From NCBI RefSeq assembly GCF_052425735.1, contig NC_135769.1, positions 26,226,001-26,290,000 of the forward strand: DNA of 64,000 nucleotides. Reading direction: 5' to 3'. Positions 7,204 to 63,839 of this stretch are shown in pieces (position 1 is the stretch's first letter; every line of letters begins with the position of its first letter). This DNA comes from Oculina patagonica (lineage: Eukaryota). The notes under the pieces were generated by a model. It saw only the letters and a program-made list of their open reading frames with translations, made no database searches and was not told the DNA's origin. A program made the translations under genes and the position numbers.

Positions 7204-9156
7204 ATGGCAACTTTACTTAAACCTGCTACTGAGCATGCTTCTCCAAGTAAAGACGTTTTCAGTGAAGTCAGTGAATTCTTTATGCCCAAAGACACACTCG
7301 ATCAGCCATGCGACGTTGTTTTGGTAGTCAAAGATGGCAAAAAATTCAAAGCTCACCGACAAGTTCTTTCAGAGGCAAGTCCTTTCTTCGAAAAGCTGCT
7401 GAACAATGACATGAAAGAGTCAAAAGAGGGAATAGTTCGGTTGGAGACGTTTTCCGAGTCCGTTGTGGGAAATACACTGACGTTTATTTACACCGGTAAT
7501 GTTCATGTATTGACTGAAGACAATTCCCGAGATCTGATCGTTATGGCCGATTATTTATTTGTTGAAAACTTAAAAAATCTCGCTAAGGAAGTTTTAGTAC
7601 AGAAGTTAAACACTTCAAATTGCATTTCTATTCACTACTTTTCCGAAAGATATCAGTGCACAGAACTTTTCTTCAACGCCACAAAATTCATCCTGGCCAA
7701 TTTCAGCGTTGTATACGCAGCCAGCCAGGAAGAAATTCTGAATATGTCGAGTAAAGAAATCCAAATGTGGATTTCAAGTGATGAAATAAATGTTACCGTC
7801 GAAGAAGACGTGTTCAACATCATTCTAGCATGGATTGATCATGACAAACGTAAGCGAAAGAAATACTTTCCCGAGTTATTTCGTCAAGTTCGACTGGTTT
7901 ATGTATCGCGTGACTTTCTATGCAGTAATATCTCAACAAATGACCTTGTGAATGACAATGAGGACCGTTTGGCTCTTGTGGAGGAAGCTATGAGGTTGAT
8001 TGAGTCTAGAAACTACGACAATCTCCCAGTCACCCCCAGAAAGTGCCTTTTGGTCCCCGTTATAGTAGCCTGTAGCCCATACAAGGGTCATCCTATTCAC
8101 TGTTATTTTCCTCGTGAGGATCGGTGTGGCACTTTAGGCGAGATGCCATTTCATTTCTTGAATAGCCATCTTATCCCTTGTCATGGTAAAATCTACGGTT
8201 TGAGGCCTGGATCCTCTTTCGACCGATGCCAAATGGCGAGTTTCGCTCCATACACTAACAATTGGATGCCATTACAATGCAAAGAAGACAGAATCTTGAA
8301 GCAAATATTTGTTGTGAATGAAAATGAAATGTACGCTTTGGTATCTGAAGCATGTGCGACGTGTCACACCACAAGACGTGTGCAACGTGTCACGGAGGAG
8401 GAGGGAGGGCAGTTTTTTTACGAATGGTCCTGCCGCAAGGAAAAACATATTTCCTTCATCACGAAGTACAAACCGGAATCAAACTCATGGGAAGACATTT
8501 CATCATTTGATCACATGCATTTAAGGGAAAATGTTTGCATTGTAGCCAAGGACAATTTTGTTTACTTTATTGGCGGTGCAGAATGTTGTTGTTGTGCAGA
8601 ATGTTGTAATCGGGATTCACGATACAACTACCTGACTGATGTTGAGAGGTATGACCTTCGCAAAAACCAGTGGGACAAAGTAGCTGACATTCACATAGAT
8701 GCAAGGAATCATATTACCAGTGCTGCGGCGCATGAAAAAATTTTCATTGCTGGCGGCCGTTTCTGTGAGGTGTTCATTGAAACAACAAATGAATGGCAGT
8801 TTGTTTCAACGCCTTATAGTTTTTATCCTCAATCGGAAAGAAAACTCCTGTCAATTGACGACAGGCTGTATATTCTGGCCAAAGTGGAAATCTTTAAAGT
8901 TCATGAAGGGAAAATTCAACACCGGATAGAGGTCAAGTGCTATGACCCTGACAAAAATGAATGGAGCCATAAAACTGAAATAAATGTCACCAAGGTGGAT
9001 TTCTTTTATGACAATCGGACCTATTGTTCAATACACCTTTTCAAAGGATTCCTCAATAATGAACCAGAGAAAGAGGACAAGCGGGAAACGCCCATTCTTC
9101 GCGCAGCTTGTCTTCGTTGCGCTTACAAGCAGAGAATACAAAACAGGCGGAAATGA
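7204..9156 (+). CDS. K1: intronless BTB-BACK-Kelch protein; 13-bp deletion at ~9090 shifts the ORF out of the repeat/CaaX tail (ancestral end 9515)
   Basis: BTB (CDVVLVV..FKAHRQVLSEASPFF), BACK (SSDEINV..EEDVF..ILAWIDHD), Kelch (YFIGG..VERYD..W; CYDPDKNEW). Alignment with K4 shows loss of aaatctccttccg. Confidence 0.9.
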   Translation: MATLLKPATEHASPSKDVFSEVSEFFMPKDTLDQPCDVVLVVKDGKKFKAHRQVLSEASPFFEKLLNNDMKESKEGIVRLETFSESVVGNTLTFIYTGNVHVLTEDNSRDLIVMADYLFVENLKNLAKEVLVQKLNTSNCISIHYFSERYQCTELFFNATKFILANFSVVYAASQEEILNMSSKEIQMWISSDEINVTVEEDVFNIILAWIDHDKRKRKKYFPELFRQVRLVYVSRDFLCSNISTNDLVNDNEDRLALVEEAMRLIESRNYDNLPVTPRKCLLVPVIVACSPYKGHPIHCYFPREDRCGTLGEMPFHFLNSHLIPCHGKIYGLRPGSSFDRCQMASFAPYTNNWMPLQCKEDRILKQIFVVNENEMYALVSEACATCHTTRRVQRVTEEEGGQFFYEWSCRKEKHISFITKYKPESNSWEDISSFDHMHLRENVCIVAKDNFVYFIGGAECCCCAECCNRDSRYNYLTDVERYDLRKNQWDKVADIHIDARNHITSAAAHEKIFIAGGRFCEVFIETTNEWQFVSTPYSFYPQSERKLLSIDDRLYILAKVEIFKVHEGKIQHRIEVKCYDPDKNEWSHKTEINVTKVDFFYDNRTYCSIHLFKGFLNNEPEKEDKRETPILRAACLRCAYKQRIQNRRK

Positions 9157-9462
9157 CATTTCCTTCTGCCCAATCTTCGCGCGACTTGTCTTCGTTGGGC
9201 TTACAAGCAGAGAATACAAAACAGGCGGAAATAACATCTCCTTCCGCCCAATCTTCGCGCGACTTGTCTTCCTTGCGCTTACAAGCAGAAAATACAAAAC
9301 AGGCGGAAATGGCATCTCCTTCCGCCCAATCTTCGCGCGACTTGAGCTTGTCTTCGTTGCGCTTACAAGCAGAGAATTCAAAACAGGCGGAAATGACATT
9401 TTCTCTCCATTCATCGCGCGACTTTTCTTCGTTGCGCTTTCAAGCAGAGAATACAAAAGAGG
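9085..9462 (+). repeat. 78-bp coding minisatellite, ~5 copies (K1)
   Basis: Unit gaaatgacatctccttccgcccaatcttcgcgcgacttgtcttcgttgcgcttacaagcagagaatacaaaacaggcg = EMTSPSAQSSRDLSSLRLQAENTKQA. Confidence 0.95.
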
Positions 9463-62800: not shown

Positions 62801-63839
62801 AGTCTGTTTACCGTAGATTTTACTGTGACAAGGGGTAAAATTACTATCCACAAAAGAAAATGGCATCTTGCCTAAACTGCACCACTGGTCCTCACAAAGA
62901 GAATAGCACTGAATTTGATGACCCTTTAATGGACTACAGGCCACTATAACAGTGATCTCAAGCCACTTTCTAGGGGTGACATGGAGATTGTCGTAGTTTT
63001 TAGACTCAATCAATCTTATAGCTTCCTCCACAAGATTCAAACAGTCCTCATTGTCATTCACAAGGTCATTTGTCGCGATATAACTGCGTAAAACTGAAGT
63101 CAAGCGATAAACCAATCGTACTTGACGAAATAACTCAGGGAAAAATTCCTTTCGCTTACTTTTGTCATGATCAATCCATGCTAGAATGATGTTGAACACA
63201 TCTGCTTCGGCGGTAACATTTATTTCATCACTTGAAATCCACATTTGGACTTCTTTATACTCGACATATTAAAGACCTGTTCGCGGTTGGCTTCGTATAA
63301 AGTGGTGAAATTTGCAAGGATGAATTGTTTGGTCTTTATAAAGTGGTGAAATTTGCAAGGATGAATTGTTTGGTCTTTGAAACAAGTTCTTCGCATTGAT
63401 ATCTTTCGGAAAAGTGGTAAGTGGAAATACAATTTGAAATGTTCAATTTCTGTAGCAAAACTTTCTCAGCGATATTTTTTAAGTTTAGAAGGAATAAATA
63501 ATCCGCTACAATAATCAGGTCTTGGGCACTGTCTTCAGTCAATATCTGAACATTACCGGTGTATATAAACTCCAGTGTATTTCCCAAAACAGACTCGGAA
63601 AACATCTCCAGCCGAATAACTCCTTCTTTAGATTCTTTCATGTCGCTGCTCAGCAGCTTTTCGAAGAATGGACTTGCCTCTGAAAGAACTTGCCTGTGAG
63701 CTTTGATTTTTTTGCCATCTTCGACTACCAAAATAACGTCGCATGGCTGATCAAGTGTGTCTTTCGGCATAAAGACTTCACTGAAAACGTCTTTACTTGG
63801 AAAAGCATGCTCCGTAGCAGAATGAAACAAAGTTGGCAT
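59865..63839 (-). pseudogene. K9: KLHL pseudogene with 41-bp tandem duplication, several frameshifts and a 2-kb insertion; ends KKRRQRKCFIL
   Basis: Fragments in ORFs 63336-63839, 62546-63244, 62403-62630 and 62004-62285; duplication at ~63296-63377; C-terminus at 59865-60104. Confidence 0.9.
60105..62079 (+). mobile_element. Helentron-like (HINE/DINE-1-type) non-autonomous rolling-circle element
   Basis: Asymmetric subterminal IRs AACTCGGAAAATT (60105-60117) / AATTTTCCGAGTT (62038-62050); 3' stem-loop AGTGGCT-cgt-AGCCACT (62052-62068); inserted in a T run; short tandem repeat near the 5' end. Confidence 0.75.

Follow-up and report, generated by a model that had tools for sequence, protein, structure and literature searches.

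A conserved cullin-docking module joined to a fast-evolving substrate domain, with tandem lineage-specific expansion and many pseudogenes, has been described for the BATH (MATH-BTB) and F-box families of nematodes and for the MATH-BTB family of grasses (PMC1257465, PMC8120010, PMC3030570). The array of BTB-BACK-Kelch genes described here, from the coral Oculina patagonica, shares with these families the conserved docking module, the fast-changing substrate domain and the tandem expansion accompanied by pseudogenes. It differs from them in that a Kelch propeller takes the place of the MATH, FTH or LRR substrate domain, in that its products carry a predicted lipid anchor, and in that positive selection is not robustly supported in the array. 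A further point of comparison is RhoBTB3, a BTB Cul3 adaptor whose C-terminal CaaX isoprenylation motif aids its localisation to membranes, namely those of the Golgi (PMC4931677, PMC3812982). Both RhoBTB3 and the array proteins combine BTB with a C-terminal CaaX motif; RhoBTB3, however, contains a Rho-like domain and two BTB domains, lacks Kelch repeats and is encoded by a single conserved gene.

The vertebrate KLHL/KBTBD proteins (KEAP1, KLHL3, KLHL12, KLHL22, KBTBD2 and KBTBD4) resemble the array proteins in their three domains, six-bladed propeller and BTB phi-x-E motif, and the variable loops of the array correspond to their substrate-contact B-C and D-A loops. They share only 15-21% identity with the array protein. 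Whereas KLHL/KBTBD genes are stable orthologues, those of the array are single-exon, lie in dense tandem arrays, form clades that are restricted to one species and rich in pseudogenes, and encode a polybasic CaaX motif behind a repeat spacer. In the literature searched, the coverage of which was incomplete, no account was found of this family, of an expanding and diversifying Cul3 adaptor family in cnidarians or of BTB-Kelch proteins bearing a Ras-like polybasic CaaX anchor; this is weak evidence of novelty. Nor did that literature yield experimental data on binding of, or responses to, foreign proteins or on polymorphism between individuals.

Nine BTB-BACK-Kelch loci (K1 to K9) were identified by tblastn between positions 7204 and 63839 of the window, the whole 64,000-nucleotide stretch of O. 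patagonica chromosome CM126646.1 that was analysed. Pairwise identity among these paralogues is 62-82%. The initial annotation had described them as intronless genes with constant framework motifs and differing loops: all of the strings that it quoted are present as written, and the annotated product of 645 amino acids is identical to the ORF, with the coding sequence of the array genes consisting of a single exon. We estimate a probability of roughly 0.6 that these single-exon BTB-BACK-Kelch genes make up a young, lineage-specific tandem array that arose by DNA-level segmental duplication with birth-and-death turnover, and whose intact proteins act as membrane-tethered Cul3 adaptors with a nearly unconstrained substrate face.

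Two of the copies, K3 (17557..19494) and K7 (45784..47721), both on the forward strand, are fully intact; each encodes 645 amino acids, with the C-termini RRQRKCFIL and RQQNCFIL, respectively. Tentative signs of transcription of these two genes come from index shares in runs presumed to be RNA. K1 (7204..9156, forward strand) has an intact BTB-BACK-Kelch ORF of 650 amino acids, but a tail frameshift near 9091 deprives it of the spacer repeats and CaaX motif. These are found out of frame with the K1 ORF in a displaced tail (9089..9515, same strand), which consists of 4.8 copies of a 78-bp (26-aa) repeat followed by a polybasic CCKCLIL segment and a stop. In K4 (25925..28447, forward strand; 840 amino acids) the BTB-BACK-Kelch body is also intact and is followed by nine 26-aa tail repeats. 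A stop precedes its CaaX segment, and a displaced polybasic CCKCLIL segment with its stop lies in a different frame at 28524..28541 of the forward strand.

The bodies of the other five copies are broken. K5 (36662..38896, reverse strand) is a frame of 744 codons, complete with four tail repeats and CYKCFIL but for one TGA, which falls in the ESNSW turn of blade III (37622-37624). K2 (10714..13819, forward strand) is a fragment running from BACK to blade V, without BTB or a 3' end and with an interruption of approximately 1.9 kb at 11053-12964. K6 (39420..41429, forward strand) is missing its N-terminus, including BTB and most of BACK, and has a frameshift near 39953-39980, one stop and a 673-bp MITE-like insertion with terminal inverted repeats (40208-40880). 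K8 (51776..57557, reverse strand) has a frameshift at 56814-56847, and its blade IV contains 3.7 kb of inserted sequence (52424-56154), bounded by a target-site duplication (ATTTTAT) but not by GT-AG ends. K9 (59865..63839, reverse strand) has at least three frameshifts, four stops and an interruption of approximately 1.9 kb at 60105-62030. The CaaX segment is kept in K6, K8 and K9. The target-site duplication and lack of GT-AG ends in K8, together with the terminal inverted repeats of K6, rule out a reading of the interruptions as introns. Five of nine copies had been called dead in the initial annotation; this count holds for the gene bodies, but with the tails of K1 and K4 also lost, a lesion is present in seven of the nine, and K3 and K7 alone are intact along their full length.

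All copies having an N-terminus matched the Pfam BTB model (PF00651) at 70-77 bits against a cut-off of 20.5, with BACK (PF07707) following at 75-94 bits against a cut-off of 20.9. An AlphaFold2 model of K3 (pLDDT 85, pTM 0.80) shows 24 propeller strands in six blades. Foldseek matched this model to KBTBD2-CUL3, KLHL22-CUL3, KBTBD4 and the Kelch domains of KLHL3, KEAP1 and KLHL12 with TM scores of 0.72-0.77. A protein-atlas search returned generic BTB-Kelch clusters only. The residues M70-K71-E72 align with F-S-E of KLHL11 and L-R-E of KEAP1, the phi-x-E motif, which we take, from the KLHL11-Cul3 structure, to be the Cul3-contact motif of BTB. None of these three residues varies among the intact copies, and across 111 relatives their conservation is at least 90%. 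The earlier proposal of a Cul3-adaptor architecture is thus borne out in its BTB, BACK and Kelch domains and conserved phi-x-E motif, and the array proteins are probably Cullin-3 adaptors. In K3 and K7 the BTB domain would dimerise and, together with the 3-box of BACK, would dock Cullin-3 via Met-Lys-Glu.

A CaaX segment was identified in all eight copies that have a 3' end. It is in frame at the true C-terminus (CFIL) in K3 and K7 and is also present in K1, K4, K5, K6, K8 and K9; among homologues, 90 of 120 have a polybasic CaaX end. The segment is preceded by a flexible, Ser-rich spacer with 1-9 copies of the 26-aa unit. Spacer and polybasic CaaX, the latter ending in Leu, may together tether the ligase to membranes, and the lipid would probably be geranylgeranyl.

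Variation among the copies is concentrated on one side of the propeller. Faces were assigned from the DSSP strand order and propeller topology; in KEAP1 and KLHL3 the face bearing the B-C and D-A loops (the top loops) is the substrate-binding side, and the loop following IAGG in the array aligns with the GGRNNS B-C loop of KEAP1. By this model topology all of the variable segments lie on the face homologous to the KEAP1/KLHL substrate face, as had been expected. Length changes (indels) occur only in top loops, and every bottom loop is of fixed length. At least five segments differ in length, one more than the four loops first reported. Entropy across the 111 relatives is 2.87 bits for top loops versus 1.37 bits for bottom loops (p=3e-13), and model M1a is favoured over M0 with a 2dl of approximately 315; the heterogeneity is therefore far beyond chance, and the pattern of constant framework and variable loops is confirmed.

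The copies in the window group together in a clade confined to this species (99% support). This, with the damage to seven of nine copies, agrees with the suggestion of a lineage-specific expansion by birth and death in which one-to-one orthologues are lacking. The flanks of the copies are homologous, which indicates segmental duplication at the DNA level and excludes a retrocopy origin. At 0.11-0.13, framework pS matches the level of divergence in the non-coding flanks (0.09-0.14), and a specific homogenisation of the framework was therefore rejected. Gene conversion was detected as a tract shared by K1 and K2 (columns 338-379, p<=5e-4) and as several marginal tracts, few of which pass multiple-test correction; K2, in other respects the sister of K4, also has an insertion in common with K5. 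It is very improbable that conversion produced the whole pattern, homogenising the framework such that copies older than they appear only seem to have hypervariable loops: the tracts, the K2 insertion and a loop pS about twice that of the framework are in keeping with it, but the agreement of framework and flanks would then demand conversion of entire units, and few tracts survive correction.

The framework is subject to purifying selection. By partition, omega was 0.3 for BTB, 0.55 for BACK, 0.6 for strands, 0.4 for bottom loops and approximately 0.9 for top loops, with a whole-gene value of 0.6. On terminal branches the framework omega is approximately 0.5 for intact and broken copies alike (p<1e-6 versus 1; p=3e-8 for the broken copies), which implies that the broken copies spent most of their history as functional genes. 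Selection maintains BTB, BACK, the beta-strands and the bottom loops (omega 0.3-0.6), while the propeller would display its B-C and D-A loops as a substrate face. Essentially free of constraint, this face diverges no more slowly than expected under neutrality, through indels, short duplications and multi-nucleotide replacements; a minority of its sites are perhaps positively selected. New copies could by this route quickly gain different binding surfaces, although most copies are soon lost, and we infer that different copies bind different substrates.

An adaptive intracellular recognition repertoire, in which diversifying selection fits the loops to bind pathogen, symbiont or non-self proteins for Cul3-dependent ubiquitination, is considered unlikely, although several results favour it, the lineage-specific array and its birth-and-death turnover among them. 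Model M2a was preferred to M1a (2dl 62-95, p<1e-13), with 7-11% of sites at omega 4-12, and 20 of the 23 candidate selected sites (P>0.9) are in or adjoin top (B-C or D-A) loops, with none in BTB or in bottom loops. The excess of sites with dN/dS>1 that had been predicted for the loops is therefore found under M2a, but it disappears once variation in the synonymous rate is allowed: adding a fast neutral class to the null model gives a fit equal to that of M2a, freeing omega in the fast class yields 1.4-2.2 (p=0.11-0.5), and the top loops as a class stay near 0.9. Since top-loop pS is also raised, to about double that of the framework, M2a was not accepted at face value. Pairwise top-loop dN/dS is 0.6-1.0, never above 1, and on strictly aligned columns top-loop omega is 1.6-1.7 (p=0.08-0.15). 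The mosaicism left by gene conversion also inflates or biases site tests. As a methodological caution, the standard site test thus returned p<1e-13 for a signal that is not specific to amino-acid-changing substitutions.

Other results also favour an adaptive repertoire. In the top loops of blades I-II, a small subset that has omega above 1 and was chosen post hoc, all of the many changes are nonsynonymous (p=0.002-0.004). On terminal branches, top-loop omega is 1.14 for intact versus 0.69 for broken copies. Top-loop pN exceeds both framework pS and flank divergence for K1-K4 and K1-K5 (p 5e-5 to 2e-8), and in pairs including K1 top-loop divergence is 2-2.7-fold above the neutral yardsticks, but this excess is absent from the K4-K5 pair. 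M2a and the K1 pairs could mean that there has been more adaptive change than the preferred reading, a turning-over array with a nearly unconstrained substrate face, allows. The lesions in seven of nine copies also weigh against that reading in that this array may be largely spent.

A wider proposal, rather unlikely in our estimation, is that large coral families of membrane-anchored single-exon Cul3 adaptors with rapid turnover, this Kelch array included, constitute an intracellular recognition repertoire. They would tag foreign or symbiont proteins at membranes such as those of the phagosome or symbiosome for ubiquitination, with the loops as diversified binding sites and the variable-length spacer setting the reach from the membrane. 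Were these proteins indeed membrane-tethered ligases with fast-changing substrate faces, they would be candidates for how a coral cell polices the proteins present at its membranes, including the interface with algal symbionts and bacteria. This idea is testable in O. patagonica, in which facultative symbiosis and Vibrio-associated bleaching have classically been studied.

Under genomic drift, the array would have arisen neutrally in a region prone to duplication, and redundant copies would lose constraint on their binding face and then die, leaving one or two to act; this is judged improbable. The damage to seven of nine copies would be expected of it, as would a top-loop omega of approximately 0.9-1.0 beside a whole-gene value of 0.6. 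Transposon fragments lie interspersed among the array genes, and a second array, with five copies in 21 kb, is likewise mostly broken. An account by drift has been put forward for the F-box families of plants (PMC3030570). The purifying selection on the framework along broken-copy branches argues against it, as do the retention of the CaaX tail and phi-x-E motif across the family and the divergence of top loops in the K1 lineage above neutral yardsticks. The array itself extends past the window, with a broken K3-like copy located approximately 30 kb upstream.

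The window lies on chromosome CM126646.1 (33.5 Mb) of the stony coral Oculina patagonica (assembly GCA_052425735.1), and tblastn searches of the window with the intact ORFs as queries identified nine BTB-BACK-Kelch loci (K1 to K9), on both strands, between positions 7204 and 63839. These paralogues share 62-82% identity, and Pfam scores for BTB and BACK were well over threshold in all copies possessing an N-terminus. The annotated K3 product (645 aa) matches the uninterrupted ORF exactly and its coding sequence is therefore single-exon; a relative from a second coral assembly likewise has a single exon and is tandemly repeated. 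An AlphaFold2 model of K3, made with 111 aligned relatives, has six blades with 24 propeller strands and closure by the C-terminal strand (pLDDT 85, pTM 0.80). Its top Foldseek matches were full-length Cul3 adaptors complexed with CUL3 (KBTBD2, KLHL22 and KBTBD4) and the Kelch domains of KLHL3, KEAP1 and KLHL12 (TM 0.72-0.77, identity just 15-21%). The BTB residues M70-K71-E72 align with the phi-x-E motif for Cul3 contact in KLHL11 and KEAP1; they are invariant among the intact copies and conserved at 90% or above in the 111 relatives. By every sequence and fold criterion tested, the window genes belong to the BTB-BACK-Kelch adaptor class.

The constant motifs and variable loop strings described in the initial annotation were all reproduced in an alignment of every copy, in which breaks were marked X. 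An antiparallel four-stranded blade places its A-B and C-D turns (bottom loops) on one face and its B-C and D-A loops (top loops) on the opposite face; the loop face is fixed by strand order, and faces were therefore assigned from topology without coordinates. Blades II-VI contribute their B-C loops, and blades I, V and VI their D-A loops, to the variable segments, which on this basis are predicted to occupy one propeller face, as had been claimed. Length variation is confined to these loops, every A-B and C-D turn being constant in length in all copies. Among the 111 relatives, mean column entropy was 0.91 bits for BTB, 1.11 for BACK, 1.63 for strands, 1.37 for bottom loops and 2.87 for top loops (top over bottom loops, p=3e-13). 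Sequence alignment places K3 V504-D506 (after IAGG) with the GGRNNS loop of KEAP1 and T539 with the Arg of its PRNRIG segment, positions which we take to be substrate contacts in KEAP1-Nrf2 structures.

Synonymous divergence has not reached saturation (dS 0.1-0.6), and omega over the whole gene is ~0.6. With a purpose-written program for codon likelihoods (GY94, F3x4, pruning that allows for missing data), M2a exceeded M1a by 2dl of 95 for ten sequences, 72 for six and 62 for the four intact genes, with omega of 4-12 at 7-11% of sites. Posterior probability was above 0.9 at 23 sites; 20 of them fall in top loops or adjoining strand ends and one in BACK, with BTB and the bottom loops contributing none. 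The preference for M2a is decisive and by itself would bear out the predicted excess of dN/dS above 1 in the loops, but three controls weaken it. When only columns at least two positions from any gap were kept, the likelihood-ratio statistic fell to 2dl=19.7, and a null whose fast class was fixed to omega=1 (rate x3.5) fitted slightly better than M2a; when freed, the omega of that class was 1.5 (p=0.5), and with all columns 1.4-2.2 (p=0.11-0.43). Counts by structural class gave top-loop pairwise dN/dS of 0.6-1.0, never above 1, with pS about twice that of the remaining gene. Fixed-partition likelihood gave an omega of 0.9 for top loops overall and 1.6-1.7 for the strictly aligned ones (p=0.08-0.15). 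The sole significant subset, chosen post hoc, comprised 19 codons of the blade I-II loops with zero synonymous changes (p=0.002-0.004). Recombination is known to produce false positives in site tests; in a GENECONV-style permutation test, K1 and K2 clearly shared one tract and several further tracts were marginal, and K2 is visibly mosaic. Codon homology is doubtful in the largest loops; copies differ there by indels, runs of altered codons and short internal duplications, such as a repeated GCAGAATGTTGT unit in a K1 loop. The Cys-rich K1 loop after FIGG (8695-8742; AECCCCAECC) arose from internal duplication of a 12-nt unit and TGT repeats, and loops seem to vary in length partly through slippage.

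Purifying selection acts on the framework, with omega of 0.3 in BTB, 0.55 in BACK, 0.6 in strands and 0.4 in bottom loops. Under a branch model, framework omega was ~0.5 on the terminal branches of intact and broken copies alike (p<1e-6 versus 1 for each class), which means that the broken copies stayed functional through most of their history and were disabled recently. Retrocopying is ruled out as the mode of duplication by homologous flanks extending 130-300 bp upstream (>1 kb in one clade) and 200-1100 bp downstream, and the duplication was therefore segmental. Special homogenisation of the framework is likewise ruled out, as flank divergence (0.09-0.14) equals framework pS (0.11-0.13). 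Against these two yardsticks the K1 top loops diverge 2-2.7x faster (p from 5e-5 to 2e-8), while no top-loop excess was found in the K4-K5 pair. The substrate face thus keeps pace with the neutral rate and sometimes outstrips it, but the excess is not confined to nonsynonymous substitutions.

Five of the nine copies had been called dead, and body lesions were located in each. K2 lacks BTB and is interrupted; K5 has a lone TGA (37622-37624), the remaining 744-codon frame being open; K6 is without its N-terminus and has a frameshift, a stop and, inserted in blade IV, a 673-bp element (40208-40880) with terminal inverted repeats (GTGAATTAAGG / CCTTAATTCAC) that looks like a MITE; K8 has a frameshift and a 3.7-kb insertion flanked by duplicated ATTTTAT, without GT-AG ends; and K9 has multiple frameshifts and stops. 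As the tails of K1 (frameshift near 9091) and K4 (stop and frameshift) are also severed, K3 and K7 are the sole copies intact end to end. In a sequence index, K3 had word shares of 0.45-0.61 among runs tentatively classed as RNA (three organism labels, three studies); the K7 share was 0.49 in a single run of this kind and at most 0.20 in the others.

A polybasic CaaX segment, an addition to the earlier account, is encoded by all eight window copies with a 3' end (among them 19465-19494 in K3, 47692-47721 in K7, 9498-9515 in K1, 28524-28541 in K4 and 36662-36679 in K5). It reads RRQRKCFIL in one clade and CCKCLIL or CYKCFIL in the other (clade A), where the extra cysteines immediately upstream (CCKC, CYKC) resemble palmitoylation sites. 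The terminal residue is Leu in the window's clade, which predicts geranylgeranylation, and Met in most of the 90 CaaX-bearing relatives. Between propeller and CaaX box lies a Ser-rich 26-aa (78-bp) tandem repeat of 1-9 copies: 4.8 in K1 (9089-9463), 9.0 in K4 (27784-28489), 4.0 in K5 (36714-37024) and one in the K3/K7 clade. RhoBTB3 is the sole precedent for such a tail among BTB adaptors (PMC4931677), and the literature searched yielded no description of CaaX-tailed BTB-Kelch proteins or of their expansion in cnidarians.

A tree of 119 relatives grouped nine rows derived from the window (eight window copies and L1, a K3-like copy upstream) and one neighbouring gene in an O. patagonica-only clade with 99% support, with K8 just outside in a polytomy. 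The remaining clades are also source-specific, and the genome holds at least 29 paralogues at 47% identity or above; no stable 1:1 orthology is thus apparent for the array. Expanded nematode and plant adaptor families share its tandem lineage-specific expansion, pseudogene load and concentration of variation at the binding face (PMC1257465, PMC8120010). Their defining claim, however, is robust positive selection, whereas the coral array offers an M2a signal weakened by its controls, and genomic drift has been put forward to explain expanded adaptor families (PMC3030570). An immune-like repertoire, as proposed in the initial annotation, is possible but unproven. We favour a birth-and-death family of Cul3 adaptors, probably membrane-anchored, whose substrate face is unconstrained and fast-changing.

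The array extends past the window: L1, ~30 kb upstream, shares 97-98% identity with K3 over the propeller and has a frameshifted BACK domain. At 23.66 Mb of the same chromosome (23656814-23678274; L003:1-21461) lies a separate array, in which five BTB-Kelch copies occupy 21 kb; most are broken, with frameshifts in at least three. Within the window, a Ty3/gypsy-type pol gene (3103-6530, plus strand; protease-like, RT, RNase H and integrase in two overlapping ORFs) is directly upstream of K1, and reverse-transcriptase (RVT_1) fragments (42447-43430, minus strand) lie between K6 and K7. A RING-finger ORF (31122-31436, plus strand) followed by a Filamin and NHL-repeat ORF (31785-33416), together spanning 31122-33416, represents a putative TRIM-NHL-like E3 ligase gene inside the Kelch array. 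On a contig of another coral-derived assembly (ENA ERZ26858540; L004:1-21989), the closest relatives, which are 55% identical, single-exon and CaaX-tailed, alternate with 7TM rhodopsin-type GPCR genes as a repeating unit.
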